From positions 62,001 through 126,000 of the forward strand of contig NW_013657652.1 in NCBI RefSeq assembly GCF_000142905.1: a stretch of 64,000 nucleotides of DNA, written 5' to 3'. Under the pieces are notes generated by a model. The model searched no databases. It saw nothing but the letters and a program-made list of their open reading frames with translations, and had not been told where the DNA came from. The DNA comes from Thecamonas trahens ATCC 50062. Its lineage: Eukaryota; Protista; Apusomonadida. The translations under genes and the position numbers were made by a program. This document shows positions 26,979 through 64,000 of this stretch, one piece after another; within the stretch, counting starts at the first letter, position 1, and every line of letters begins with the position of its first letter.

Positions 26979-27051
26979 CTCGGCCTCGGGCTCGACCTCG
27001 TCAGACTCCATCTCGTCTGGCAGCAGCGCGAGCAGCAGCCTTACTGGCGGC
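26979..27051 (+). repeat. 73-bp intergenic copy of coding sequence at 29378-29450
   Basis: ctcggcctcgggctcgacctcgtcagactccatctcgtctggcagcagcgcga(g/c)cagcagccttactggcggc occurs twice with one mismatch. Confidence 0.95.
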
Positions 27052-27440
27052 CATCCCCTCCCCCCCCCTTCCCCCCACCCCCTCCACCCCCCTCCCCCCT
27101 CTCTCTCCCTCCCGCTCCCCGATTGCGACAGGCACGCCTTTTCCTCGTTGACCATGCTCAAAATCACACAGAGATATCGGTGACCATGTGGAGCTGCCAT
27201 ATGTGGAGCTGCCATTCGGCACAGCCGTAGACTTCAAAGGCACCTCAGCCGCACATAAACCATCCCGACTTCTTTCTCCTTGCAAGTTCGATTTGCAATT
27301 TGCTTTTCTATCATATTAGTTGCTTGTGTACCTGCTGTGTTGCTTAAGCGACGTGCGCAGCATATATTATGTTCCCCAACGGTTGACCCGCAACTCACTT
27401 GTTTTTTTTTTTTTTCGGCCACTCAGAACAACAAGTTTCG

Positions 27441-29519
27441 ATGAAGATTCTTCTTTCTCTGGTGATGGCCCTCGGCCTCCTCGCCTATGCTATGGGCGTT
27501 GACGCATTTGTATGCGATGAGTATGGACCTATTGTGGCCATCAATGGGCTACGCTTGGACGGAGCAAACTCTGTCCTGACGAGTGGGGGCATGAAAGTGA
27601 CTGTCGTCGGCGCCAACGTCGACAACGACAACAAGCCGCATGCGGTGACTTGCCCGCTCGACATGGCTTCGTCGTGTGAGTCGCGTGATTTGTCTGGCGG
27701 CCAAGGCGCCAACTCGGGCAAGGACTCGCATGTCGTTGCTGACGACGCTGGATCCCGGTTTGTGGTGGCGGCGACCAACGGGGCGGCGGCGAACAGACCT
27801 TGGCTTTTCTTGTGCAACGAAGGGGCGTCGCCGTGCACCAGCCACGATGTGTCGGGAGCGCAGGGAGCCAACTCGGGCTTGTCGCCCAAGGTTGTGCTTG
27901 ACAACGCCAACAACAAGCTCATCACCGTTGCAATCAACGGCGGTCTGTTTGATGCTCTCTATGCGTATGTGTGTAACGCGGCGGATGCAAGCGGATGCAC
28001 GGCGCACGACATTTCATGCGGCAGCGTCATGGCCTCCGGCACGAGCATTGCTGCCGGGCTGACTCCGTCTTCGAACCGACTGGTGGCTGTCGGCAAGACT
28101 GCGCTGCCGAGCCGCAACATGCAGGTCATCCAGTGCGAGTCGGACATGTCCGGCTGCTACAGGCGCGTAATTGATCCAGTGTTTAACACAGGCACCGAGC
28201 CGGTCCTGGCGTTTAGCGGCACCGATCGCGCGATTATTGCCGCCACCGACGGCAGCAACAAGCTCAAGATCTACGTTTGCTCCATTATCTTTGACTCATG
28301 CACGACATACGTGGTGGGTAACTCTGTTCTCCGCGCCACGTCGATTGTGGTCGACGACGCGGTCAACAAGCTCGCTGTCTTTGCGGTGACAACCAGCAAC
28401 AACGCCATCCAGCTTGTCTGTAGCCTCGGTAGCAGTCTCGCCTGCACTATCTTGCCGGTGGCGCCATCGACCATTCCTCTTGCTACAGCGCGCCCTTTGC
28501 TCGATGCTGTCATTATCGGCGTCGACACCGCCAGCTCGGCCTTGGGCATCGTGCCGTGTCTGAGCCCGCCGCCATGCCCAGCGGACGCGACGAGCCTCTC
28601 GAGCTCTTGCCGGCTTAATGAGCTCTCGATCGACAGCCAGCTTGCGCTCGCACCGCTGACGCGTGTGGTTATCAGCGGCGAACTTCGTGTGCTGTCGGGT
28701 GGCTCGCTCGTCCTCGCCGACGCTGCCGTGGAGACAGACGTGCTCACCCTTGATCCGACTTCCACCATCACTGTCGACCTCCGCAACTTGACGTTGTGGA
28801 CGAGTGATCTAATGGGCAATACCACGGTCCCAATAGTGGTCAACCAGACCGCATCGCTTGCAGGGGATCTCATTGTCCGCCTCAATGACTCCGCGGCTGA
28901 CGCGTTCAACATGGGTACCCCCATTCCCATTATTGTCTTTGGCGACTCAACATCGTCGTTCACATCAGTCATCATCGAGATGAATGGCGAGCGCATGCCG
29001 CGCGCCGCGCTGATGTGCGCCTCCAATGGGTGCGTGGCGGTGAGTGAGGCGAGCGCGTCGTCGACGTCGTCACCGTCGACAACCAGGACGACCATGTCGT
29101 GGATGTGGTGGCTTCTCCCGCTCGTCTGTGCCTTCCTCATCATCATTGTCATCATCAACATCACGCTGTGGTATCGGCGACGAGGTGCGTCGAGGGCCGC
29201 AGATGCGGGCGAGGCTGATGCCGAGCAGGCCCAGAGCACGAAGGCGTCCGCCAGCTCCGACTCGTCACGCCTCGATGACGACTCCAGTAAGGGCTCCGAG
29301 TTTCGGTGGGAGTCTGGCGACTCTGGCTCGATGCCGGTCCTCGCGCGAACGACCGCGTCGGCTGTCCCGGACATCTCCTCGGCCTCGGGCTCGACCTCGT
29401 CAGACTCCATCTCGTCTGGCAGCAGCGCGACCAGCAGCCTTACTGGCGGCGCGGCGGTTCACTCGGGAGGCGCAATCCAGCCTGTCGCTGTGCATGTCAC
29501 CTCTTACTACGCCGTTTGA
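27441..29519 (+). CDS. Type I membrane protein with ~50-aa Cys-pair repeats (probable beta-propeller)
   Basis: Signal peptide MKILLSLVMALGLLAYAMG; repeats of form C-x6-7-C…(H/R)D(L/V/I)S.(G/A)QGANSG; TM WWLLPLVCAFLIIIVIINITLWY; Ser-rich tail. Confidence 0.8.
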   Translation: MKILLSLVMALGLLAYAMGVDAFVCDEYGPIVAINGLRLDGANSVLTSGGMKVTVVGANVDNDNKPHAVTCPLDMASSCESRDLSGGQGANSGKDSHVVADDAGSRFVVAATNGAAANRPWLFLCNEGASPCTSHDVSGAQGANSGLSPKVVLDNANNKLITVAINGGLFDALYAYVCNAADASGCTAHDISCGSVMASGTSIAAGLTPSSNRLVAVGKTALPSRNMQVIQCESDMSGCYRRVIDPVFNTGTEPVLAFSGTDRAIIAATDGSNKLKIYVCSIIFDSCTTYVVGNSVLRATSIVVDDAVNKLAVFAVTTSNNAIQLVCSLGSSLACTILPVAPSTIPLATARPLLDAVIIGVDTASSALGIVPCLSPPPCPADATSLSSSCRLNELSIDSQLALAPLTRVVISGELRVLSGGSLVLADAAVETDVLTLDPTSTITVDLRNLTLWTSDLMGNTTVPIVVNQTASLAGDLIVRLNDSAADAFNMGTPIPIIVFGDSTSSFTSVIIEMNGERMPRAALMCASNGCVAVSEASASSTSSPSTTRTTMSWMWWLLPLVCAFLIIIVIINITLWYRRRGASRAADAGEADAEQAQSTKASASSDSSRLDDDSSKGSEFRWESGDSGSMPVLARTTASAVPDISSASGSTSSDSISSGSSATSSLTGGAAVHSGGAIQPVAVHVTSYYAV

Positions 29520-29594: not shown

Positions 29595-32500
29595 TCACTC
29601 GAGCGTGTCGAGTGCAGGCGGCGGCGGCGGCGGCACGGCAAAGCTAGACACAACATCGTCACCGACTGTGCCGTTGAGCGATGTCTGCGCAGTACGCGAG
29701 TCAAACGAGACAAGTTCAGGCCCCGAGTCGACCATCGAGTCAGGAGGCGAGTTGCCTGACGAGACGTGGACCAACTGCGGATGAGCAGATGAGAACTCGT
29801 CCATCTGCACTTCGTTGCGGAGTGAGCAGTCGCCGACAGTGCCAAACTGCGACTCGCCGATGTCGAATGACTCGTCGGCCGACTCGCCAACTGCCGCAAA
29901 CTGGTCGTCCACCTCCTTGGCCATAGCCAGCCAGCGGTAGGTGTCGTAGATCGAGCCGCCAATAATGGCCAGAAGATTGGATCCGAGCGAGAACACGATG
30001 CCGACGTTGCGGACTCGCGGCGAGACCGTGAGTGACGAGCCAAAGTAGAGGACAAGCGTCGACGAGGCGATGCAAAAGACAGCAAGGGCGTTGTGGAAGA
30101 CGTCAAAGTACGGCTTGACAAACGCAACGTGTGCTCCAGACGCCGCGAGGACGGCAACCGCGTAGAACGCCTTGTTGTACGGATTTGACACTGCGTACGA
30201 CGAAGTCATCGCGAAAACGACTCCAAGCTTGCGCGCCATCACCGCAACCTCAAAGTAGTACGCTTGCTCACGGAAGCGCGCGACGAGGAACCCGTACCGC
30301 AGCGCAAACTCAATCGGACCGAGCACCTTGCGCCGGTTGACGAGGAGGAAAATGATCGCTGAGGGCAAGACAACGCAGTATGCAGTGGTGAAGAAGACTG
30401 CAAACGGTATCCATGCCGCGTGGCCGCCCGAAAAGCACTCGTCGCTCGGCGACGGCACGTGGCTTAGCCGCCCGTCACGGTCGCGCGCGCAGTCAAAGTA
30501 CGACAGCGCCACAGATGCGAGCGGAAGAAAGAGAATGGTGACGAGCTGAAAGTACGCTCGCACCATCACCGCTAGCATCCCGCGCCCACGGACCAATATC
30601 TCGGTCCGGAAACGCGCCTTGCGCCGCGTCCACCGCGCCCGGCGTGACGCCGCAGCAGGCAGCACATCCATAGCTCCCGGGTGGTTGCGGAGATAAGCCT
30701 CGCCGTGCGCATCGACCCAGCGTCCATACGCCCAGTTGATGCCGTAGATGACACAGAACGGAATGAGGAGCAGGACAGGGCCGAGCATGGTGAGCACGTA
30801 CTTGAACCGGTAAACGTGTGAAGCGCCGAGCCCGCACTCGGGCGACGTGAGCTCGATGTTGAGATTGGCAAACGAGAGCACGTCAAAAACCGCCCGCGCG
30901 TACTCGGGCCACGCCAGTGGCAGCTCACCGTACATGGCAGAGATTTGCAGCGAGGTGAGCCCGATGATGAGCGCCGCGTACTTGTACAGCGATCGAGACT
31001 GTGTGTTGAACCAGACCAGGAAGCTGACGCCCCCAAAGGCGACCGCCACAAACACCACAACAAGGAGCGAGCCCAGCGGTGAGCACTTATGACACTTGGA
31101 TCCGAGCTGGTAGTAACCCGAGACGCATGACGCACACAACCGCCCACCGTACCCGACCGCGCACCGCCCGGATCCGGTGCATGCCTGGCTGTTGGGACAC
31201 GAAATGAAAACGCTTGGATCCGAGCCTGGGAAGAAGCCCGGTCCGGCCTCGGGCGGTGCGTTGCCTCCAGAACACACACCGCCCGGCGGGCACGCCACGC
31301 ATGACGGCACGCTACTCTTGACTGCCGTGTTGAAGTATGACGGCACGCAGTGGCAGTCCGATACGTTCGTCGCCTGCGAGACAGACGTAGTAAAGATCGG
31401 GCAGACATTGCACCCGTCGCCGGTCGGCGAGTACGAGCCCGGCGTACACGGCGTGCATGCGCCCTCGGCATCGCCGGCATACCCGGGCTCACACTGCATC
31501 AGCGTCGCCATGATCTGTGCCGGCGTAACTCCACCAGCGCCGGCAAGTCCGACCGCCTGGACCGCCACCGCAAAGCGGGTCGTGGGCGTGAGGCCTCGCA
31601 ATGTGTGCTCGGTGCCGGCAACAACAACCGCGTCACCGGTCTCTGGATCTGTCGCCGGCACCCCGTCGAGCAGGATGCGGTATGAGAGCAGGCCCTCGTC
31701 AGGATGGATATATGGCGGCGCAAGCCACGAGAGAAGCAGCGTCGTCTTGGTCGCACGAATGAGGCCGAGTGCGTCCGGTGCGCCAGGCGGCGTGAGCGTG
31801 CAATCGGGTGGAATCGCGCGCCCCGGTGCGCAACTCGCGCACTCGGTGTGGTTGTTGACGCAGGTGACGCACGGAAAGACGCAGAGTGGCAGCTCGCACA
31901 CCACATGTCGCGGGGAGCTTGTCTCGCGGTCCTGCCATTGCCAGGCCTCGGACGGAAAGTACGACGGCTCGGTGTTGAACTCGAGGCCATTCTGCCTAAT
32001 CGGCTCGTTCGGCTGGGTGCTGCCCGGCCGCCACAATGTAAACTGGTCTTGCAGCGTAATGCCACGGTCCACCGTCACAAACTTGGCGTAGTACGCCGGT
32101 CGCAAAATGCCCAACCATGTGTTCTTGGTCGCTATGCCCAGGTGGACAACCTCATTCTGGATGTGGGCAAACTCTTCGGCGCTGTTGGGCACCACGGGGT
32201 AGCCCGGTGTCGGTAGGCCCAGGCAAAACTCGGTAGCCTCTGCATACGTGTAGAGATTGTCTAGATCGGCAGCGTAACACGAGGTACCGAACCGCTGTCC
32301 AGTGCTGCAATCACCCTCGCTGCTAAAGGCGACGCACGTCGGCTGAACGCCAGACCATGCCAGCGGGTAGCCATCGCGAAAAACGGTGATCGATGAGTAC
32401 ACTTGATTAACGTTGTCGGTGTGCGGGTCGCCGAGGCCGACGATGATGAACACAACTTTGTGGTCCATCTGCGGCGGATCAGTGAGCGTGTAGAGGTGGT

Positions 32501-34597
32501 GGAGGAGCGGCATAAGCTCAGGCGTGTACGCGGTGCCCTCGGCCGACTCTGTCGGCATGGTCCATGGGATAAACAGCGAGGTTCGCGGTCGTGATGAGAT
32601 GTCAAACGGGTCCGACGTTGAGAGCCGCGGCGTCCGGTTGTTCGATGCGTGGGCGTAGATACGAACGTTCACCGGTGCTACCGGCGACGGGCTCCGCCAG
32701 CGGAACCGCAGCTTGAGGCTCGAGTACCGAGCGATGGGATCGATGTCAACCTCGACGGCGGACATGTTGGCCCCAAGCCAGAGCGAGTTGACATTGAGGA
32801 CGGTGCCGTCGCCCAGCTCGTGCGTGTCTTCGCTATCACCAGTGAAGACTTCGCCGAGCTCGGCAAACTCGGTGCACGTCCGTCGCGCCGAGCCGGCTAG
32901 GTAGTACCCCGCGTTGCAAGCCACAACAGCATCGCCGCCGAGCTCGTTCGAATACGAGACGATGCGCCCATTTGCCGGCGCCTCGACCGCATCACACACG
33001 TCCAGGAGGCGAACGTTGCAATCAGGCACCAAGCCCCAGCCGGCCATACACTCGGTGCAGACCGGCGCTGCCGCTGGACCGGTACACCGACGGCAGTTGC
33101 CTGGACACTTGGGCCCCTCGCAGATATAAAACCGCGTTCCGCCCGATTCGTCCTCGAGCTCAAGATCGTTGTACTCGCCGGTGGTATCGTCGAGCGTGAC
33201 AAACGGCTCGTTGAGAACCTTGGTGTGCCGGAGAACCTGTGACGTGACGTTGCCGAGCCAGAAGAACCGGAACTCATCCTCGTGGTCGTAGAGAAGGGTG
33301 GCGTCGTACGCCGGATCCTTGGTCATGCCCACCCAGCAATCGCCATCGAGCAGCTGCGAGACAAAGACAGCCTCGTCGTAGCTCTCGAGCGAGACGAGAC
33401 GGAGGCCCTCGCCCTCGCAGTTTGCCTGGGCATCCGACCATGTGCGCGAGGTGTGAACGTGACTGTAGACGCGGCCGCCAAAGAGGTTGGTGTAGATGTT
33501 GATGCGGTCGTCCGACACGTCGATCGGAGAGAGGCACGCGGCCTCGACGCCGGACCAGTACGGCGTCCCGCCGTCCCATCGCGGGTGCGCCATGCACGTC
33601 CGCGTAGGCGAGCCCTGGAACTCGTATCCAGCGTCGCAGCTGAGGGTGCATACCGATCCAATGGCACCGCTGTTGGTGCACGAGATCGATCCCGAGGTCG
33701 GCGACGCGAGCGCGGGGCAAAAGCTGGTGTCGACGGTGCACGCTGGTGGGCCCACTCGCCCGATCATGCATTCGGTGCAATCACTGCTGTTTGCCCCGCA
33801 CGTCCAGCATGAAGGGTCACACATTGGCCCGCTACAAACGTACGCGAGCTTCGTGCCTGGATCGCGCTCGACAAAGACATCGGCGGAATCGCGCGAGTTG
33901 ACCGATGTCGCAAAGGCTGCCGAGTCTGACGGCTCGCCGGGCGGCCAATCGCTGAAATCGGCCGGCGTCCCATCAGTGTTGGCAAAAGTGGAGTCAGTTC
34001 CCGAGGCCTGTAGCGAGACGAGTGGACCGATGACGACATGAAGGACACATCAAGTCAAGAGGTGCAAGAGGTGCAGCGAGCAGCGGTGAACATGGTGAGT
34101 GGGACAAAGGCGGGAGGGCGTGTGCTGCCCAAAAAAAAGGTGCCAACATCAGGCCAAAAGGAGACAGGGCACGAGGAGTAGGGAGGGGAGGGAGTAGGGG
34201 AGGGGGGATTAGGCGCGGGGGGGGGTGTCGAAGGGGGCGGAGCAGAGGATGAGAAATACGAGAGGGGCAACAACAACGTCAAGGACACAAAGGGTTTCTC
34301 CTAGCAGACACGTACATCATAGTATGCGATGAGGTAGTCCCCTTCGGGGCTCTCGGGTGGTGTGAGGATGGTCAGGAGATTGGTGAGGTCGAGCGGGGAA
34401 TGAAGTGACGCCAGGTGGCCTCCCCACTCATTGCACGCGTGCTCGGCGAGCCAAATCGAGGTACGCCCACTCAGGCTGGATTCGACCATGTAACACCGAC
34501 CCCCAATAGTGTAGGGACAGTTTAGTGTGGCTTCGCTGCTGGTGACAAGCGCAAGCACAAGTGCTAGTGCATACGCAATGCCCGTAGCCCTGGCCAT
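29595..34597 (-). CDS. Large multidomain surface receptor: signal peptide, 3 C-type lectin, sushi/CCP, furin-like, FN3, ephrin-receptor-like Cys repeats and a multi-TM C-terminus; exon 1 34316-34597, exon 2 29595-34007
   Basis: A phase-0 intron GTACGT…CTACAG (34008-34315) joins YLIAYYD|ASGTDS…WPPGEP into one lectin domain. Sushi motif CDAGYEFQGSPTRTC…WSG; FN3 LSWLAPP…LRGLTPTTRFAVAV; YGFLVARFREQAYYFE in the TM region. Confidence 0.85.
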
Positions 34598-34810
34598 GAG
34601 TAAAACTGCGCCCTTCCGTCCCGAGACAAGCGATGCACTCGCTTCGGCTGAAAACTCCACGTCAAAGATTCCGCGTCCGATGCCGTGCAACACAACCGAG
34701 CGCTGCCAGCATGAGCGAATGACGTCATGATGTGGTTGGCTGGCTGTCGTGGATCGATGGGTGGACTCTGATGTGTGCATGGGTGGTAAACCGGTGGTGA
34801 GTGTTTTCGA

Positions 34811-35404
34811 TCACCGGAGGGCGTAGTAGTCCTCGGAGAGGGCACCCGAGGAGCGCCGCGATGGTGAGGCCGAGCCAAACTGCAGCGAGAGCAGCGGCGA
34901 GTAGTTCCCGGTGCGAACACCGCGGATGGCGGAGGAGAGGGCGACAAAGGCGACAAACTGGATGATGGAGGCACCGATGACGAGCCACGGACCAGCAGCC
35001 CAATCGTACGAGATGTCGTTGACGGCGACAAGCATCCACACCAGCGCCGAGCCGAGCGAGAAGAGCATGGCTAGAAGCGAGACGACCACGCCCGCACGGG
35101 TGGCCTTGGACACGGTATCTTTCCCGGCCTGGTTTCCGACGACGAGGACAAAGACGGCGCCAACAATGGCGAGGCCCGAAAACAACGCCGATGCAATCAG
35201 GCCCGCAAAAGCCAGGCCGCCGTAGTCCACCAGTGGCTGCAGCGAGGGCTGGTTGGTATCGAGCGAGTCGCGGGCTGACTGGAAGAACTCGACGTAGTCT
35301 CTCAGCGTCACCCTGTCACACCATCCATAGCCCGCAACCATGTATCGCCCGCGACAATGCATCGCCCACACACACACATCGCCCACACACACGCATCCCC
35401 CCCC

Positions 35405-35435
<31 letters not shown>

Positions 35436-36623
35436 TCGCCCATACACACACACACACACATCGCCCAGGCCGGTGCTCGGATCACATACCGACCCCCAAT
35501 AGTGTAGGGACAGTTTAGTGTGGCTTCGCTGCTGGTGACAAGCGCAAGCACAAGTGCTAGTGCATACGCAATGCCCGTAGCCCTGGCCATGAGTAAAACT
35601 GCGCCCTTCCGTCCCGAGACAAGCGATGCACTCGCTTCGGCTGAAAACTCCACGTCAAAGATTTCTGCGTCCGATGCCGTGCAACACAACCGAGCGCTGC
35701 CAGCATGAGCGAATGACGTCATGATGTGGTTGGCTGGCTGTCGTGGATCGATGGGTGGACTCTGATGTGTGCATGGGTGGTAAACCGGTGGTGAGTGTTT
35801 TCGATCACCGGAGGGCGTAGTAGTCCTCGGAGAGGGCACCCGAGGAGCGCCGCGATGGTGAGGCCGAGCCAAACTGCAGCGAGAGCAGCGGCGAGTAGTT
35901 CCCGGTGCGAACACCGCGGATGGCGGAGGAGAGGGCGACAAAGGCGACAAACTGGATGATGGAGGCACCGATGACGAGCCACGGACCAGCAGCCCAATCG
36001 TACGAGATGTCGTTGACGGCGACAAGCATCCACACCAGCGCCGAGCCGAGCGAGAAGAGCATGGCTAGAAGCGAGACGACCACGCCCGCACGGGTGGCCT
36101 TGGACACGGTATCTTTCCCGGCCTGGTTTCCGACGACGAGGACAAAGACGGCGCCAACAATGGCGAGGCCCGAAAACAACGCCGATGCAATCAGGCCCGC
36201 AAAAGCCAGGCCGCCGTAGTCCACCAGTGGCTGCAGCGAGGGCTGGTTGGTATCGAGCGAGTCGCGGGCTGACTACATCGCCCACCACCACACGTCGCCC
36301 GCAACCCACCGCACGCCGCATGAGTCCCCCCGCCCCGGCCTTCCCACATCCTCCCCTGCCCCACCCTACCCCACCCTCTCACACCCTCCGCACACGCCTC
36401 ATCCCAGCACTCTCTCCCAGAGACACGAGACATACTGGACCTGGAACGGAAAGAGGGCGTTGTGTGGGACAGTGACCGAGAGCAGCCCCACGTGCGAGCG
36501 TGACGACTCGGTGGCTCCAAACACCAAGGTCATGTGGATCCAGGGAATAAAGCCAAGAGCAGCAACGAGGAGGACAATAGCTGCAAATGACGACACAATA
36601 GAGACAAAGCCCGAGGCGCCCAT
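34811..36623 (-). CDS. Four-TM claudin/PMP22/SUR7-like protein, 229 aa; exon 1 36436-36623, exon 2 34811-35312
   Basis: TM1 followed by W…VGL; the phase-2 GTATGT donor (36435) and GACAG acceptor (35313) give FQVQ-VTLRDYVEFFQ; three more TM segments and a YDWAAGPWL motif. The intron contains the duplicated segment. Confidence 0.7.
35488..36274. repeat. 787-bp duplicate of 34495-35280 inserted in an intron, flanked by ACAT direct repeats
   Basis: Near-identical copy (only difference seen: gattccgcg vs gatttctgcg); ACAT at 35484-35487 and 36275-36278. Confidence 0.93.
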
Positions 36624-36731: not shown

Positions 36732-39700
36732 TCAATAGAAGCTAACCTTGGGCGGCTCGGCCGGTCCGGCGCCGTACGAGGCAAGGAGCTCGACGGTCAC
36801 AATGTTGGCCTTGGTCACGGGCTTTTCAAAGTCAAAGGCGAGGACGGTGTCGACCTGGGCCATGGGCACCACAAAGATGCCGACTCGGATCTGGGAGCAA
36901 ATGCGCTTCTTGGCGTCAACGCCGCAGGCCACGATGCGAACCTGCCGGACCTGCGACGCAGGACCGTCGTCCGAGTGCCGGACCGTCAAGACCACGCCCG
37001 AGAGCGTGAACGGCTCCACCCCAAAGTCGAGCGTCCGCCGTGCGTTGCGCGTCTTGGTCCAAAGGATCTTGCAGAGCGCGGGCGAAGGTGCCGGCGCCGG
37101 CGCGTACGGCAACGGCGACGGCGAGACCACGGGCGTCGGGACCGGGAGTCCCTCGACCACCACCCGTCCGGCACTGAGATAGTTTCCGACCGCTTCGCCG
37201 TCCGCCAGCGAGAGGGTGAGCGTGAGAATCCGAACCGGCGCCGTCGGGGCGTCCAGTTCGTACCGATGCGACGCCCGTGGCGCGAGCTCAGTCACGTCAA
37301 ACGCTCCACAGATGGCTCGGTCGACAATGGTAGCGCCTGCCGCGAGCTCGACGTGGATGCCGGGCCGGCCAGACTCGCCGCCATACCCGGCGCCATCGGC
37401 GACAATCGTTACCGAGTGCACCATGGCCGCGGACGAGAGGACAATCATGAGATCCAGCGCCTTCGCGCCGTCCGGGCCCCGCCACGCGAGCCCGTCGAGC
37501 GACGGATGCGGCGAGAAGAGGAGCACTTCGGCCGGGTGGCTCTCGGCCGCGGTCGGGACCGAGGCCAGGAGCGCCGCCGCTGGATACTGGGCCAGTGACG
37601 AGAGCGTGCCTTGCTCGTGGTACGGCGCGAGGTTCGGCGTTGACGCCCGAGCTGCGGTGAGGAGGAGCGAGCGGTGCGCCCGCGCGGCCTCCGAGTGCGC
37701 CAGCGCCTGTGCCCGCGCCAGCTCGTCGACCTGTGCCAGCACCCCAAGCTGGTCGCGGAGAACCGAGCCGCACCGCATGCACACAACCTCCTTGACCGAC
37801 GTCACATGCTTGACAATGACGTGACGCTCCGGGTCGAGGCAGTCCTGGCAGAACCGCCGGAGGCAGTGCCCGCACGACTTGCCAGATGCCGAGAGCATGT
37901 TGGTGCACTCCGAGTTGGAGCAGATGACGCTCGCGTACTTGGAGCTCTTAGCGAGCTGCTTGACCAAGTCGACGTCAACCTTGTTGACAAACCGGTTCGG
38001 GTCAAAGAACTCGAGTCGGAGACCAAGCGCAAGCAGCGCAACGTCGCGCTGGCTCGGGCTCAGGCCGAGCTGCAGCCGCAGCAAGTCGAGCTGCAGCGCC
38101 GCCAGCAGCGTCATCTTGGTCTTGGACGCCACAAGCTGTGCCGCCGCCTGGCGGTACTGCTCGACATCGGCCGCACTCCCGGTTCCGGGCGCGGCTTCCG
38201 CTGCCTCGCTCGCGCCAGGTTCGTCGGCATCGGCTTCGATGGCGTCAGAATTGGTGCCGGCATCCGGGCTGCCTGTGCTCGCTTTGGCCGCATCTGTGTC
38301 CGCGTCCGCCGGCGGCGGTGACTTGGTCGCTCGCCGTCGCCGCCGCCGCGACTTGCTGCCGCCAAGCTCGCGGGTAAGCTCGAGGACGCGCGAGGCGAGG
38401 CCGACCGACGCGAGCTCGGCTGACGCCGCCAGCGCGTCGGTCGACTCGAGCGAGGTGCCAAAGACGGCAACGGCGCCGAGGGACATCGGCTTGTGGCCCG
38501 GCGGCGCCCGGAACGAGACGTGCACAAACCGCTCCGGCGCCCGGACGCCCGGCTCGGCGCCCTTGTAGTCGTACAGCAGGCCGGCCCGCTCTTCGACCGA
38601 CGCCGCGCCGATGCGGAACGTCAGCCGCGTCCCAGACTTGACTGCAGGAAGCGCCAGCGCCTGGTAAAGGATGCGACATGAGTCGACGTGCTCGCCGGCC
38701 CAGACGTCCACAAGGACCGGCGCCACCGTCCCAGCGGTCTGGACCAACGTCACCGAGAGCTCAGATACGTAGCACGGCCGACGAAGGAAGATGTACAGCT
38801 CGGCAACCTCGGAGCCCTCTATGCACTCCCATACCGCGTCCGAGTGCTGCAGCAGATCGTCGGCCGATGCCGCACCAATGCCGGTGGTGAGCGAGAAGAG
38901 CGGCTTGACCAAAAACGACGCTGGCGGGCCCGACATCCACACCGCCCGCGGCAGCTGCCCGGCCCGGGCCACCAGCGACGGAAAGTGCCGCGCCTTGTCA
39001 AGCCCAAGCCACATGGTGAAGAGCGTGTGTCGTTGCGAGTCGTGGACCACGTTTTGGAACCGCCGCTGGATGGAAATGAGCGTGTTGTTGGGCGCCGCGT
39101 TGACGTTAGGTGAGTAGTTGCGGATCATTGACGAGTGTGCCGCCGGCGAGTTGGTGTACAACGTCGAGCACACATCGCCGTGCGCCACAAACATCTCAGC
39201 CAGCGCCGCCAGCACGCTCGGCTCCATCCAGCTTGTCAGGTCGGCCAGGCTTGCCCGTAGCAGCGGCCACTTGTTGTCGCGCCCATCGCTCGCCAGCGCC
39301 GCCGCTGCTTGAGCGGGCACCGCCAACCCGAGCCCTAGACGCCGCAGCATCTCGCCCACAATCTGGAACGAGGCAAAGAACGAGGCCACATTCGTCCGGT
39401 CAAGCGAGTCGGCGCAGTTCCATCGCAGCAGCGCGCCCTGCTCAGACTCGAGACGGTAGGTAAACGACGAGAACGGCGAGCGCGGGTTGTCGACAAGCTC
39501 AATGGCGCCGGTGGCCACCTCCATGCTACCCAGCGGAACCGAGAGTTGCTGCCACAGTGCGCCGATGGTCTCGTCCGGGCCGAGCATCTTGAAAATGCCA
39601 TGCCAGTCAAAGTTGATGAGCGAGAGCTCCATGGCCATCGACTCGCGCAGCGACCGGACCGCCGTCTGGAAGTGTTCCGAGAGGAGAGTCTCGGACGAGT

Positions 39701-41474
39701 CTGGTGAGACTCGGAGGAGGTTGATGCACGAAATCGGCACCTCGCCGTAGCGCGAGAGTAGCCGAGTAAAGTACTTGTCAACGGACTTGTACGGCTCGTC
39801 GCCGATGATCATCGCCGCCTGCCCAATCGCCACCGACGACTTGAGCTCGTTGGAAAACCGAACAGGCACCGTGCCGCGCCGCCAGCAAAACGAATAGAAC
39901 TCAAAGTCGGGTGCAGCAACAGTCGAGCCGCTCGCCCCGTCTTCGGCACCCTCCTTCTCCTTTCCCCCGCCCTCGCCCTCACCCTCGCTGATGTCAGCCC
40001 GCCACCACATGATCAGCTCGCACTCCATCTCGTTGCCCGGCTCGCCGAGGTCGTTCAGCCCACGCGCGTTGTAGCGGGTACCCGGATTGAGGCACGACTT
40101 TTTGGTGATGAGGCCGAGCGAGACGCGCCGGCCCTGAGGAGCAGCCTCGCCGCGCAGGACCAGGGTCTTGGACTTGGCCGCGCCCTGGATGAGCGAGACG
40201 CAAAAGCCGCGGAGGCCGAGCGTGGCAAACGGCTCGGCTAGCCACGAGTTGTAGGTGAACGCTGGATGTGGCGAATCAACCGGTTCCACCGACGGAAACG
40301 GGCGCGTCAGGTCGAGCGACTCGCAGAAGCAGTGAAGCGAGTCGAGCGGATAGCCCATGAGCGCCGCCATGGCCTTGGCCTCGGCCTTGGAACACGGCGC
40401 GGGGTGCTCCAGTGGGATCTCGATCCACCGCGACGCCGCAATGGTGTACACCGTGTGATTGTCGAACAAAAGCATCGACGGCGTCGCCTCGGTCACCACC
40501 AGCAGATACCCGGTCGAGCCGAGGACAATGTACCCGACAATGGCCACTGCGTCGACCTGCGCACTTTCCACGAGCTCATACCCACGCCCGGTCAGCATCG
40601 CCAGTGCTTCTGCCGACGACGTAAACGTGTCCACGCCTCGCCTGCCCTCAAACGACAGCCTCCCGGTGTGCTTGTCGATGGCGATCACGTGCGTGTCCTT
40701 GCGCGACGCCAGCGACGACACGATGAACTGCTCCCAGACCAGCGACCAGCCGCGGACAGAGGGAAGACCAGCGACCGTACCACGCCCATCCCAGCAGCAT
40801 GCAGAGCCCCCCACGCGCCGCCACCGCCCCGCGCGCGCGCCCGTCAGCCCATGCGATGAGTGCAGTCTGTGTGAGTCAAACTGTCGTCCTTCCTCTTCCC
40901 CCCCCCCAGTTTCAGAAANNNNNNNNNNNNNNNNNNNNNNNNNNNNNNNNNNNNNNNNNNNNNNNNNNNNNNNNNNNNNNNNNNNNNNNNNNNNNNNNNN
41001 NNNNNNNNNNNNNNNNNNNNNNNNNNNNNNNNNNNNNNNNNNNNNNNNNNNNNNNNNNNNNNNNNNNNNNNNNNNNNNNNNNNNNNNNNNNNNNNNNNNN
41101 NNNNNNNNNNNNNNNNNNNNNNNNNNNNNNNNNNNNNNNNNNNNNNNNNNNNNNNNNNNNNNNNNNNNNNNNNNNNNNNNNNNNNNNNNNNNNNNNNNNN
41201 NNNNNNNNNNNNNNNNNNNNNNNNNNNNNNNNNNNNNNNNNNNNNNNNNNNNNNNNNNNNNNNNNNNNNNNNNNNNNNNNNNNNNNNNNNNNNNNNNNNN
41301 NNNNNNNNNNNNNNNNNNGCCCACACACACACACACTCCACCACACACCCTCCACCACACCCTCCCCCCCCCCACCCACACACACAACACTGACCAACGA
41401 ACCCTTTCTCCGGTGGTAGCCGTCACCACATGGTGGCTCGACTGCCGGTGCTGTGGCTCCCCCGGAGCAGACAT
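36732..41474 (-). CDS. SAC9: SAC9-like phosphoinositide phosphatase (SAC domain + Cys-rich FYVE-like finger); one intron (~40730-41402) containing the assembly gap
   Basis: Catalytic RWNCADSLDRTN (plant SAC9-type R(F/W)NCADSLDRTN), NPGTRYNARGLN…GNEMECE, WRRGTVP, SIQRRFQN; C-x4-C…CGHC…FCQDC…CMRC finger; short first exon ending at a GTTCGT donor. Confidence 0.85.
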   Translation of the reverse strand: MSAPGEPQHRQSSHHVVTATTGERVRWSVLCVWVGGGRVWWRVCGGVCVCVGXXXXXXXXXXXXXXXXXXXXXXXXXXXXXXXXXXXXXXXXXXXXXXXXXXXXXXXXXXXXXXXXXXXXXXXXXXXXXXXXXXXXXXXXXXXXXXXXXXXXXXXXXXXXXXXXXXXXXXXXXXXXXXXXXXXXXXSETGGGEEEGRQFDSHRLHSSHGLTGARAGRWRRVGGSACCWDGRGTVAGLPSVRGWSLVWEQFIVSSLASRKDTHVIAIDKHTGRLSFEGRRGVDTFTSSAEALAMLTGRGYELVESAQVDAVAIVGYIVLGSTGYLLVVTEATPSMLLFDNHTVYTIAASRWIEIPLEHPAPCSKAEAKAMAALMGYPLDSLHCFCESLDLTRPFPSVEPVDSPHPAFTYNSWLAEPFATLGLRGFCVSLIQGAAKSKTLVLRGEAAPQGRRVSLGLITKKSCLNPGTRYNARGLNDLGEPGNEMECELIMWWRADISEGEGEGGGKEKEGAEDGASGSTVAAPDFEFYSFCWRRGTVPVRFSNELKSSVAIGQAAMIIGDEPYKSVDKYFTRLLSRYGEVPISCINLLRVSPDSSETLLSEHFQTAVRSLRESMAMELSLINFDWHGIFKMLGPDETIGALWQQLSVPLGSMEVATGAIELVDNPRSPFSSFTYRLESEQGALLRWNCADSLDRTNVASFFASFQIVGEMLRRLGLGLAVPAQAAAALASDGRDNKWPLLRASLADLTSWMEPSVLAALAEMFVAHGDVCSTLYTNSPAAHSSMIRNYSPNVNAAPNNTLISIQRRFQNVVHDSQRHTLFTMWLGLDKARHFPSLVARAGQLPRAVWMSGPPASFLVKPLFSLTTGIGAASADDLLQHSDAVWECIEGSEVAELYIFLRRPCYVSELSVTLVQTAGTVAPVLVDVWAGEHVDSCRILYQALALPAVKSGTRLTFRIGAASVEERAGLLYDYKGAEPGVRAPERFVHVSFRAPPGHKPMSLGAVAVFGTSLESTDALAASAELASVGLASRVLELTRELGGSKSRRRRRRATKSPPPADADTDAAKASTGSPDAGTNSDAIEADADEPGASEAAEAAPGTGSAADVEQYRQAAAQLVASKTKMTLLAALQLDLLRLQLGLSPSQRDVALLALGLRLEFFDPNRFVNKVDVDLVKQLAKSSKYASVICSNSECTNMLSASGKSCGHCLRRFCQDCLDPERHVIVKHVTSVKEVVCMRCGSVLRDQLGVLAQVDELARAQALAHSEAARAHRSLLLTAARASTPNLAPYHEQGTLSSLAQYPAAALLASVPTAAESHPAEVLLFSPHPSLDGLAWRGPDGAKALDLMIVLSSAAMVHSVTIVADGAGYGGESGRPGIHVELAAGATIVDRAICGAFDVTELAPRASHRYELDAPTAPVRILTLTLSLADGEAVGNYLSAGRVVVEGLPVPTPVVSPSPLPYAPAPAPSPALCKILWTKTRNARRTLDFGVEPFTLSGVVLTVRHSDDGPASQVRQVRIVACGVDAKKRICSQIRVGIFVVPMAQVDTVLAFDFEKPVTKANIVTVELLASYGAGPAEPPKVSFY
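40919..41318. other. Assembly gap (400 N)
   Basis: Run of N. Confidence 1.
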
Positions 41475-60595: not shown

Positions 60596-62011
60596 TGGCG
60601 GCCTTGGTCACCGGCGCGCCAAAGACCGATGAGCCGCCCCACGGATCGTCGCCTCCGGCACCAAAGATGTCGTCGTCGTCGTCGTCAGCAAAGCCAGCAA
60701 AGTTGGAAAACGCCGGCGCCGCCGGCTTGGGCTTGGACTTGGCCGCCCCAGGTGCGCCGAACATCGAGCTGGCGTCGGCGCCGCCGCCGAGTGAGGCAAA
60801 CGCCGCAAATGGATCGCCACCCAGATCGTCATCGTTATCCATAAAGCCGGAAAACGCACCCGGCGGCGGCGTCGCTCCATGAGCTGGCGTCCGCGTCGCA
60901 GGCTTCTTCTTGGTACTCTTCTTGACAGACTTTTTCTTCTTGACAGACTTTTTGCCGCTCTTCTTGGTCGACTTTTTGCCGCCCTTCTTCTTGGTCGACT
61001 TCTTTTTGCTCGCCTTGGCTTCGGGCTGAGGTTCAGCCTTGGCCTCGGCCGGTGCACTAGCAAACAGCGACGTATCGTCGTCGTCACCGTCGCCGAACAG
61101 CGTCGACTTGCCAGTCGAGCCAAACATGTCCTCATCGTCGGCTGCAGACTTGCCTGTCTTGGTCTTGGTCTTGGTCTTGGTCTTGGTCTTGGTCTTGGTC
61201 TTAGCCTTGGCTGACGCCTTGCCGCCGCCAAACAGGTCATCGTCGTCTTCTTCGTCCCCGCCAAACATTGACGCAGCCGCGGTTGGAGTCGCTGAACTCT
61301 TGCTCGTCTTGGCCTTGCCGCCACCAAACAGCACGTCGTCGTCATCGTCGTCATCTCCGCCAAACATCGATGCAGCCGCACTCGCGGTACTTCTGCTCGT
61401 CTTGGTCTTGGTCTTGGCCTCGGTCTTGGTCTTGGTCTTTGCGCTCGACGCACCATCTGAGGCGTTTGCCGACTTTGCAGCTGCACCCTTCTTGGTCGAC
61501 GTTTTGCCCTTGCCGCCCTTCTTGGTCGACTTCTTCCCGCCCTTGCCACCCTTCTTCTTGGTCGACTTCTTGCCCTTCTTCTTTCCGCCTCCGCCTCCGC
61601 CTCCGCCTCCGCCACTGAGCGGATCATTGAGCGGATCGCTGAGCGGATCATTGAGCGGATCATCATCAACCTTGACCTTGCTCACCTTTGCACTCTTCCC
61701 ACCTCCTCCCGCCTTGCCAGTGGAAGCAGCGCCCGAGGAGCCCATCGAAGCCGCCGCACCGCCCGTCTTGGCCTTGGTCTTGGCACCACCTGAGCTCGCC
61801 GTTTTGCTCTTACTTCCACCGGAGAACAGCGCTACCCCCACCACCACACACACACACGCACATACCCCACCAGCCCTTTCATGAGTACCTCCTCTTCTCA
61901 CGCCCCCCGGCATGCGCGTGACACAGGCTCACACCCGTCCACCAGCCGTCGGCCCTCGGAGCGAATTTTCCCTCAAGTCACGCAGCCGACACAGGGCACC
62001 CGGCACACACA

Positions 62012-62587: not shown

Positions 62588-64000
62588 ATGCTCCGTCCCA
62601 CGCTTTTCGCGGCCTTGGCTTGTCTGCTTATGCTGACGCTAGCCGCGCGTGCTGCCATGGCAGCAACTATTTCCGTTTCGACCACTTCGCAACTGACCAA
62701 CGCCATCAACTCGGTCTCCCCCGGAGACACTATCGAGTTGGCGGCTGGTGCCTCGTTCAACTACGCTGGAGTGACTCGGCTGACATGTGACGTCGATGGT
62801 ACGGCCTCCAACCCTATCACCGTCCGTGGCCTGCCTGGCTCGACCATGACCTGGACCCACTCCTCCAACTACGTCGAGGGTTTTGTGGTTACTGGCAAGC
62901 ATTGGATTTTCGAGGACCTCGACATCACCGGCACCTGCTCCAACCACAACTACTGCGAGCACGCGTTCCACGTCCAGGGCGACGCTGACTTTTTCGTCAT
63001 GCGCCGCTGCGTCATCCGCGACTTTAACGCCCAGATCAAGTCGAACATCGGGGGTGGCCAGTTCCCTGACGATTGTCTCCTCGAGCACAACGAGTTCTAC
63101 AACACCGGCGGGCGCCGGACCTCAGCGCCGGTCACCCCGGCCAACATCGATGGTGGCGAGCGGTGGATTGTCCGCAACAACTACTTCCACGATGCGTGGA
63201 AGGACGGCGGCAACACCATCTCGTACCAGACGTTCATGAAGTCCAACGGCGCCGACGGCATCTACGAGGGCAACCTCATCGCCTGCTCGGTCCTCCACTC
63301 GGGCGGCGTGCGCATCGGTATTTCGTTTGGCGGCGGCGGCACGTCGCCAGACTCGGTGTGCGGGCAGGGGACATGCAACCCGGAGCACCGCCGCGGCATC
63401 ATGCGCAACAACGTGATCATCAACTGCGCCGCCATCGGCATCTACCTCAACGAGGCGCGCGACACCAAGATCTACAACAACATCCTGTACAACACCGACG
63501 GCATCGACGTGCGGTTCGCAACCTCGACCGCCGACATCCGCAACAACATCATCGCCGGCGGCGACATCTCTGACCGCGACGGCGGCTCGTCGACCAGTGG
63601 CTCCAACTGGCTCACCAGCACTGCCGTGGCTGCCTCTGCCTTTGTCGATGCCGCAGGCGGCGACTTCCGTCTCTCCGGCGACTCGTCGCAGCGGTCGAAC
63701 TTTATCAACGCTGGCGTTTCGCTGTCGCAGGTCACCAACGACTTTTGCCGGCGCTCCCGGAGCTCGCCGCACGACATCGGCGCGGTCGACTACTCGCAGG
63801 GCTCGTGTGACACTTCGGATCCGCTGGCAGTCGGCGGCGGGACGCCATCTCCGACCCCCGCCCCGACCCCGACCCCGGCCCCGACCCCGACCCCGGCCCC
63901 GACCCCGGGACCAGTCATGTGCTCCGGTACCTCCGTCATCAACTCGGGCACATCGGGCACCATCTCGATGCCGACGCCGTTCTCGACCACCTACTACTAC
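62588..64000 (+). CDS. Secreted right-handed beta-helix (pectate lyase/chondroitinase-B-like) protein with PT-rich linker and probable start of a CUB domain; 3'-partial and absent from the ORF track
   Basis: Own translation: signal peptide MLRPTLFAALACLLMLTLA, AINSVSPGDTIEL, GTASNPITVRG, CEHAFHVQGDAD, DFNAQIK, WIVRNNYFHD, GIMRNNVIINC, then TPAPTP repeats and CSGTSVINSGTSGTIS; I found no stop before the window end. Confidence 0.85.
   Translation, partial: MLRPTLFAALACLLMLTLAARAAMAATISVSTTSQLTNAINSVSPGDTIELAAGASFNYAGVTRLTCDVDGTASNPITVRGLPGSTMTWTHSSNYVEGFVVTGKHWIFEDLDITGTCSNHNYCEHAFHVQGDADFFVMRRCVIRDFNAQIKSNIGGGQFPDDCLLEHNEFYNTGGRRTSAPVTPANIDGGERWIVRNNYFHDAWKDGGNTISYQTFMKSNGADGIYEGNLIACSVLHSGGVRIGISFGGGGTSPDSVCGQGTCNPEHRRGIMRNNVIINCAAIGIYLNEARDTKIYNNILYNTDGIDVRFATSTADIRNNIIAGGDISDRDGGSSTSGSNWLTSTAVAASAFVDAAGGDFRLSGDSSQRSNFINAGVSLSQVTNDFCRRSRSSPHDIGAVDYSQGSCDTSDPLAVGGGTPSPTPAPTPTPAPTPTPAPTPGPVMCSGTSVINSGTSGTISMPTPFSTTYYY

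Follow-up and report, generated by a model that had tools for sequence, protein, structure and literature searches.

A 787-nt direct copy of neighbouring two-gene DNA inside an intron of Thecamonas trahens, probably inserted during the repair of a staggered break

Thecamonas trahens is a member of the Apusomonadida, a group whose genome dynamics are, to our knowledge, almost unstudied. In the assembly of strain ATCC 50062, the first intron of a minus-strand gene, AMSG_11966, harbours a 787-nt segment that is a near-perfect duplicate of DNA lying only 207 bp away, and the duplicated DNA belongs to two different genes. The question that this locus raises is therefore by what process a segment spanning parts of two genes came to be placed within the intron of one of them, and what, if anything, it does there. 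The window analysed here is the 64,000-nt stretch at positions 62001–126000 of contig C28 (NW_013657652.1) of the 28.7-Mb assembly; positions are those of the window unless they are preceded by a contig name (C28 or C33). The structure described rests on one draft scaffold assembly, which has gaps elsewhere.

The host gene is known from a single protein. The translation of exon 2 (34814–35311, minus strand) matches one sequence among the 5.8 billion proteins searched, namely the 229-aa AMSG_11966 of T. trahens ATCC 50062, and no homologue besides the protein itself was found at E<=0.001 in this word-indexed set. The public protein corresponds to exon 1 joined to exon 2 at the source copy (hereafter A), with one 1123-nt intron (36435–35313) removed and the whole of the inserted copy (hereafter B) contained within that intron. 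No Pfam family was found above threshold for this four-TM protein. The ESM Atlas model of AMSG_11966 gave TM values of 0.64–0.70, with feature scores of up to 0.91, against claudin, clarin, GSG1 and PMP22 clusters; on the basis of this model, the gene may be described as encoding an orphan four-TM protein that is claudin/PMP22-like, where ‘claudin-like’ is to be read as a fold-level lead only and not as family membership.

The second gene involved, also on the minus strand, is found 3′ of AMSG_11966 across a 213-nt spacer and encodes a C-type-lectin-like receptor, with its ATG at 34597 and a GTACGT donor at 34315. Exon 1 provides a signal-peptide-like N-terminus followed by the first half of a C-type-lectin-like domain (CTLD), and the gene runs on into a 1409-aa ORF (29595–33824) that carries Sushi, Lectin_C and fn3 domains (Pfam). 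Exon 1 alone gave no Pfam hit, and when it was compared with the big receptor ORF by BLASTP there was no significant match; exons 1 and 2 taken together contain the motifs GHLASLHS and WPPGEP, which, as read by eye, are typical of a CTLD. A further minus-strand ORF in the same part of the window (36732–41474) has SacI homology together with both SAC9 GBDL domains (Pfam E=5e-46, 3e-43 and 6e-15), a plant-type SAC9 architecture in an apusomonad, and is broken by a 400-N gap at 40919–41318.

A repeat search, the alignment of the two segments and a BLAST of the window against itself all showed that 34495–35280 (A, 786 nt) and 35488–36274 (B, 787 nt) are direct copies with 99.75% identity, offset by 993/994 nt from start to start. 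The three results agree with one another, and they bear out both the coordinates and the content that a preliminary description of this DNA had assigned to a 787-bp copy. Chance may be excluded as the origin of a match of 787 nt. Divergence between A and B is only ~0.1–0.25%, and the mismatches are confined to one spot, ~75 nt upstream of the lectin ATG, where B reads TTTCT (35662–35666) and A reads TTCC (34669–34672). Two changes are present at this site: a T-run is longer by one T in B (TTT at 35662–35664, against TT at 34669–34670 in A), and C34672 of A corresponds to T35666 of B, which is a CpG-to-TpG change. The copied segment A is itself without an intron. A search of the whole 28.7-Mb assembly found neither a third copy nor an allelic or empty-site contig. 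The features of the locus are collected in Table 1.

Table 1. Features of the AMSG_11966 locus, in window coordinates (TSD, target-site duplication).
Feature	Position	Strand	Details
AMSG_11966 exon 1	36436–36623	−	ATG at 36623; 62 codons + 2 nt, phase 2
AMSG_11966 intron 1, as annotated	35313–36435	−	GTATGT donor (G at 36435); acceptor ..GTGACAG before 35312
AMSG_11966 exon 2	34811–35312	−	1 nt + 166 codons + stop
Source copy A	34495–35280	−	786 nt; from alignment, exon 2 and protein, lectin exon 1
A, first part in gene order	35280–34811	−	last 470 nt of AMSG_11966 exon 2, stop included
A, middle part in gene order	34810–34598	−	213-nt intergenic spacer, whole
A, last part in gene order	34597–34495	−	first 103 nt of CTLD-receptor CDS (ATG + 34 codons)
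Spacer between copies	35281–35487	−	207 nt: first 32 nt of exon 2 (35312–35281) + 3′ 175 nt of original intron (35487–35313)
Left TSD copy, ACAT	35484–35487		minus strand ATGT; with last GT of B gives GTATGT at 35489–35484
Inserted copy B	35488–36274	−	787 nt, same orientation as A, inside AMSG_11966 intron 1
Copied receptor start in B	35490–35590	−	ATG at 35590; 33 codons + 2 nt, phase 2
A/B difference	35662–35666		one extra T in B + CpG to TpG
Right TSD copy, ACAT	36275–36278		start of intact ACATCGCCC; minus-strand T + first AG of B gives TAG at 36275–36273

The direction of copying can be read from what surrounds each copy. A is contiguous with coding sequence at both ends, in that the annotated protein depends on the 32 nt that directly precede A and the lectin frame continues downstream past 34495; B is flanked on either side by intron satellite. 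The reverse assignment, with B as the original exon 2 and A as the copy, was considered and rejected, both on account of the 32 nt that the annotated protein requires upstream of A and because the TSD is found at B only. A is the functional source copy, and B is a derived insertion into a pre-existing intron. That B is a derived insertion with a true TSD follows from three observations together: A joins coding sequence on both sides, only B has the ACAT repeat, and excision of B restores a motif of the host intron.

The preliminary description had B flanked exactly by ACAT, which was confirmed at both ends, and the source has different flanks (gtaac immediately before A and ggaag immediately after it), so that ACAT is foreign to the copied segment. 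By our own arithmetic, an identity of 4 nt between the two flanks would arise by chance in ~0.5% of cases at the local base composition, this being a single observation. The satellite motif, which reads ACATCGCCC on the plus strand and GGGCGATGT on the minus strand, is found at 35376, 35433, 35458 and 36275; its presence on either side of B means that the two flanks are parts of one satellite-like intron, and the earlier view of a single interrupted intron with a common motif on both sides was thereby corroborated. When B and one ACAT are deleted, the sequence becomes ..GGATCACATCGCCCACC.., in which ACATCGCCC is intact, and the same motif occurs three more times in this intron. The motif that would be restored in this way argues further against a coincidental match between the flanks. 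In its composition ACAT is three-quarters A/T, in a region of ~60–65% GC and a genome of ~63% GC.

The intron that received the insertion would have been short and repetitive. It measures 1123 nt now, compared with 332 nt without B and one ACAT, and on the sense strand this pre-insertion intron contains 21 runs of at least three G and four (TG)n tracts. The host intron (35313–36435, minus strand) is a satellite in decay, built from GGGCGATGT(GT)n units, and these units, together with the 21 G-runs, would make it prone to the formation of G-quadruplex (G4) structures and Z-DNA. A related tandem array of the (CA)n/ACATCGCCC type is located at C33:395092–395374, with 82–86% identity, and provides the sole other hits in the genome.

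It has to be asked whether the second copy exists at all, as the reads of a single real copy, or those of a second allele, might have been placed twice. The assembly is indeed a draft of scaffolds with N gaps (the 400 N mentioned above plus four more in 256 kb), and one of the two differences between the copies is a difference in homopolymer length, which is typical of sequencing error. False duplications normally adjoin gaps and repeat the spacer as well (X-Y-gap-X-Y), but at this locus there is no N gap within 4.6 kb and a second spacer is absent. Nor is there a reason for an artefactual extra copy to be lodged between two ACATs whose removal restores the satellite motif. The other difference is a CpG transition, the commonest natural substitution, and because the copies differ in this way A and B were assembled from different reads; in addition, the 207-nt spacer would be short enough for single reads to span the end of A and the start of B. 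The argument originally made against misassembly, from the flanking repeat and the small sequence difference, is a reasonable one (the copies differ, the TSD restores the motif and there is no nearby N gap), although it does not amount to proof. An artefact of assembly is considered quite improbable.

The junctions themselves are informative about the joining step. Microhomology is 0 nt at both ends of B, with target T against source C on the left and A against G on the right; with no shared nucleotide at either junction, the joins would be blunt and without microhomology, as fits blunt NHEJ. A repeat search found no inverted repeat at the ends of B, and no A-run or poly-A was found at either end. 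As the copy also spans two genes and the spacer between them, the initial description of an insert without TIR or poly-A tail that is not a simple retrocopy is sustained.

On balance, we take B to be a recent, DNA-level local insertion, in which a blunt copy was joined by NHEJ at a break whose 4-nt 5′ overhangs had been filled in. The sequence of events would have begun in intron 1 of AMSG_11966, with its many G-runs and (TG)n tracts, where a double-strand break left 4-nt 5′ overhangs (ACAT); after fill-in of both ACAT overhangs, NHEJ would have ligated into the gap a blunt duplex of 786 nt copied from the DNA 207 bp away. The expected outcome is a 4-bp TSD, junctions without microhomology and an intron extended from 332 to 1123 nt. 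As for the origin of the break, topoisomerase II (Top2) is favoured, judging only by the geometry of the cut: the TSD is exactly 4 bp long and has an A/T-rich core, which is the pattern of a Top2-type break, and a Top2-type stagger in an intron rich in (TG)n and G-runs is plausible. Top2 reportedly prefers alternating purine–pyrimidine repeats, a preference said to have been described by Spitzner et al. in 1990. In yeast, it has been shown that the 4-nt 5′ overhangs left by Top2 can, through complete fill-in and NHEJ, give rise to 4-bp duplications with A/T-rich centres (10.1101/2020.05.03.075358), and the capture of DNA fragments at breaks by NHEJ, often without microhomology, has also been documented (10.1101/2024.03.07.583931). 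Random capture alone, however, leaves the adjacency (207 bp) and shared orientation of the source unaccounted for. A proximity-dependent origin is likely, the fragment having perhaps been released from the sister chromatid or made by repair synthesis nearby, and a proximity-dependent, possibly synthesis-based process is hinted at by two other near-identical copies that are also direct and lie within 2.4 kb of their sources.

The same adjacency is what brings template switching (FoSTeS/MMBIR or SDSA-like) into consideration, in which a nascent strand, having stalled in the structure-prone intron, would jump to a nearby template, copy 786 nt and return 4 nt behind its point of departure, leaving an apparent TSD and an identical a-X-Y-X-c order of segments. 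A source that is only 207 bp off and co-oriented is what such a process would be expected to use; the other local copies (73 and 78 bp) are likewise direct and within 2.4 kb, the intron would be G4- and Z-DNA-prone, and both A/B differences fall within 3 nt and could be one error of a low-fidelity polymerase. FoSTeS/MMBIR-type switches normally use 2–5 nt of microhomology, whereas here both switches would have taken place at 0 nt, and the re-copying of exactly 4 nt is more simply understood as the fill-in of a 4-nt overhang. Template switching is held to be unlikely, weakened as it is by the missing microhomology, but it is the main rival. A further route would be the tandem duplication of a 993-nt unit (34495–35487), after which the second spacer was lost almost completely. 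That tandem duplication takes place in this genome is shown by a perfect 641-bp head-to-tail duplication on the same contig (C28:43140–44422), but two events would be needed at the AMSG_11966 locus, the second of which would have to remove exactly 203 nt so as to leave ACAT; moreover, there is no trace of a second spacer after B, and the copies stand 207 nt apart instead of head-to-tail. We consider this route very unlikely.

Two further alternatives to fill-in and blunt NHEJ were also weighed. If the insertion were RNA-mediated, a cDNA of a read-through transcript from AMSG_11966 into the lectin gene would have been captured at the break; the copy is co-linear with such a possible minus-strand transcript, and the capture of cDNA at breaks is known (10.1101/2024.03.07.583931). 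The copy has no poly-A, however; its start falls within an exon, at 32 nt from the acceptor, its end falls within an exon of another gene, and it takes in promoter/intergenic DNA on the way. The segment is without an intron whose loss could reveal an origin from RNA, and no retroelement copies were found in the sampled 256 kb, which leaves the RNA route a slim prospect. The second alternative would be a transposable element or an introner with ends that fall by chance in two genes. A 4-bp TSD is present, and some introners have 4-bp TSDs that supply a splice site (10.1101/2022.06.06.494994), but only the source and the copy exist in 28.7 Mb, there is no TIR, the segment is made up of ordinary coding and intergenic DNA of two genes, and the junction motifs bound an exon-like segment and not an intron. 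An element of this kind is scarcely credible here.

The wider setting was surveyed by self-alignment and self-BLAST of C28:1–256000 only. In self-BLAST this stretch proved extremely repeat-poor, with 21 repeat pairs (22 hit rows) of which all but one are local and direct, and no dispersed transposon copies were detected in it. Its near-identical repeats, older arrays included, are all local and all direct. The preliminary description had proposed a search for similar local copies flanked by direct repeats; two shorter direct copies (73 and 78 bp) do occur in C28:1–256000, but neither has a clean flanking direct repeat. The short-range copies are direct in 3/3 cases (p=0.125), and three co-oriented copies in 256 kb, a small sample, are a hint of a recurrent local copying process.

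The two shorter copies differ in their content. The 73-bp copy (window 26979–27051, from 29378–29450, 1 mismatch) stems from the 3′ end of the coding sequence of a plus-strand ORF of 710 aa (~27387–29516) and is located ~400 bp upstream of the start of that ORF; GCGGC is found both on the left flank of the copy and at its end, but this pentamer is native to the source, so that the repeat is ambiguous and no clean TSD can be assigned. The 78/77-bp pair (1 indel) is found at C28:145076–145153 and 147347–147423, 2.27 kb apart, and consists of the 5′ UTR and first 15 codons of a minus-strand gene, copied to a place ~65 nt upstream of where the next minus-strand gene probably begins; no flanking duplication was found at this copy. 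An RNA-derived pattern in which all three local copies would be the 5′ ends of genes was rejected, as the 73-bp source is a 3′ coding end, and a minus-strand ATG at that source was set aside as lying in a probably spurious antisense frame. N gaps are present at C28:102919, 156270, 184600, 189268 and 209927, and none of them adjoins the local copies.

Other duplications on the contig are of a different kind. At C28:43140–44422, outside the window, a long coding frame on the plus strand contains a perfect 641/643-bp head-to-tail tandem duplication, of which copy 1 is read by the ORF at C28:41500–43803 and copy 2, in a frame that is relatively unchanged, by the ORF at C28:43730–46000+. As the length of the unit is not divisible by 3, the gene can be intact only if splicing removes exactly one unit, and a single AG/GT is found at C28:43250–43253. 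All five substitutions between the units are CpG in copy 2 against CpA in copy 1, a pattern that resembles CpG deamination in one copy and on one strand; the pair is a candidate for intron birth by tandem duplication or for repeat-directed CpG mutation. An older local duplication occupies window positions 62798–64000 and beyond (C28:124798–128327), with 1034 bp at 94.8% identity, 2.5 kb apart, and a 465-bp pair at 91% lies between its two copies; duplication of parts of genes is the probable explanation.

Whatever its origin, the insertion has placed potential splice signals at both of its ends. On the minus strand the junctions read ..GATGT/AG TCAGCC and ..GGTCG GT/ATGT GATCC, and the motifs that had been pointed out there at the outset (ATGT+AG as a TAG acceptor, GT+ATGT as a GTATGT donor) are both present. 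The G of the junction acceptor is at 36273, and the junction donor (G at 35489) is identical to the host intron's own donor hexamer. The earlier reading had combined a DNA-level insertion into an existing intron with the conversion of one intron into two: the first part holds (the TSD is at B only, and excision restores the motif), but the second is at odds with the public model, in which 36435 is spliced to 35313 as one intron. By default, the insert is taken to be spliced out within one long intron, as in that gene model. Were both junction sites used, B would become a 783-nt exon with a stop after 26 codons in the exon-1 frame, and the two-intron form would therefore inactivate the product.

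A different outcome would be possible from the copied lectin start. Its ATG (35590) is in frame with exon 2 whether the transcript is spliced at 35489/35313 or left unspliced: splicing would join the two in frame because the copied piece ends in phase 2, like exon 1, and the would-be second intron (35489–35313) is 177 nt long, which is divisible by 3, and contains no stop in the frame of the chimera, so that the frame stays open even without splicing. The predicted product of the lectin-start/exon-2 chimera is ~200 aa long, an open frame extends over 34811–36025 (404 aa), and B carries the complete 213-nt spacer, which is predicted to hold the promoter of the receptor gene. These chimera and exon frames are based on coordinates and on the translation of each exon by itself. 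No annotated chimera of this type was found, and a protein search whose length range covers it returned AMSG_11966 only. A random fragment would end in AG and GT and match in phase in roughly 1 in 770 cases (our own arithmetic, post hoc), and the AG/GT ends and the phase match are recorded as unexplained and not as a sign of function; the junction donor and acceptor and the in-frame chimera would be latent possibilities. It is distinctly doubtful that the insertion is not silent, that is, that it provides a second promoter-plus-signal-peptide exon for the four-TM gene through GTATGT at 35489 and the old acceptor, acts as a cassette exon splitting the old intron, and possibly attests an active short-range copy-paste process in a repeat-poor genome. 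If this were true, one mutation would have given birth to a chimeric secreted/membrane protein together with new splice sites.

If the structure is real, the locus is a natural outcome of break repair that can be read with unusual ease, since source and target, the 4-bp fill-in and the two blunt junctions have all stayed intact. It would mean that a single repair event can make an intron three times as long, and that another gene can receive from the same event two splice motifs and a polyadenylation region, along with a promoter and a start codon followed by a signal peptide (all predicted). The locus bears on the growth of introns, on the origin of exons and chimeric genes, and on which breaks (possibly Top2 breaks in purine–pyrimidine repeats) seed such events. 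As one clean instance of a process already known, in one draft assembly, it illustrates current knowledge rather than changing it.

Several known systems share part of this structure. The Top2/NHEJ duplications of yeast and of TOP2A-mutant cancers (10.1101/2020.05.03.075358; PMC8795545) are likewise exactly 4 bp in length with an A/T-rich core, but they are bare, with nothing inserted, whereas 787 nt lie between the repeats here. The Break-Ins insertions of yeast (10.1101/2024.03.07.583931) are genomic inserts of 0.1–1.5 kb with NHEJ-type junctions, many of them without microhomology; their sources are mostly distant fragile or repetitive loci, or very short inverted local foldbacks, in contrast to the adjacent and direct source of B. 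In the tandem model of intron birth (Hellsten et al. 2011; PMC3265369), a local genic duplication also brings ready splice signals in one step, but that model requires the head-to-tail duplication of an exon segment with AGGT, splicing of which restores the original mRNA, and the copy described here is dispersed, intronic and spans two genes; the 641-bp tandem at C28:43140–44422 fits the model better than the 787-nt insertion does. Introners (Huff et al. 2016; 10.1101/2022.06.06.494994) resemble the locus in that the TSD gives part of the splice site at the junction, but they are multi-copy, often have TIRs and themselves become the intron, unlike a two-copy segment of host genes without the features of an element. 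The closest match is the staggered-break insertion class of Daphnia neo-introns, in which insertions flanked by 4–12-bp repeats create and enlarge introns (PMC4202315; model PMC3020277). In Daphnia pulex (Li et al. 2009; PMC4202315), as here, non-TE DNA is inserted at a double-strand break and is flanked by a short direct repeat (4–12 bp there, 4 bp in T. trahens). Most of the Daphnia inserts lie in exons, where they form new introns, and no source can be identified for them, whereas B entered an old intron from a source 207 bp away and has junction motifs that bound an exon rather than an intron; secondary insertions within existing introns, which lengthen them, have also been described in Daphnia (PMC4202315), and it is these that B resembles.
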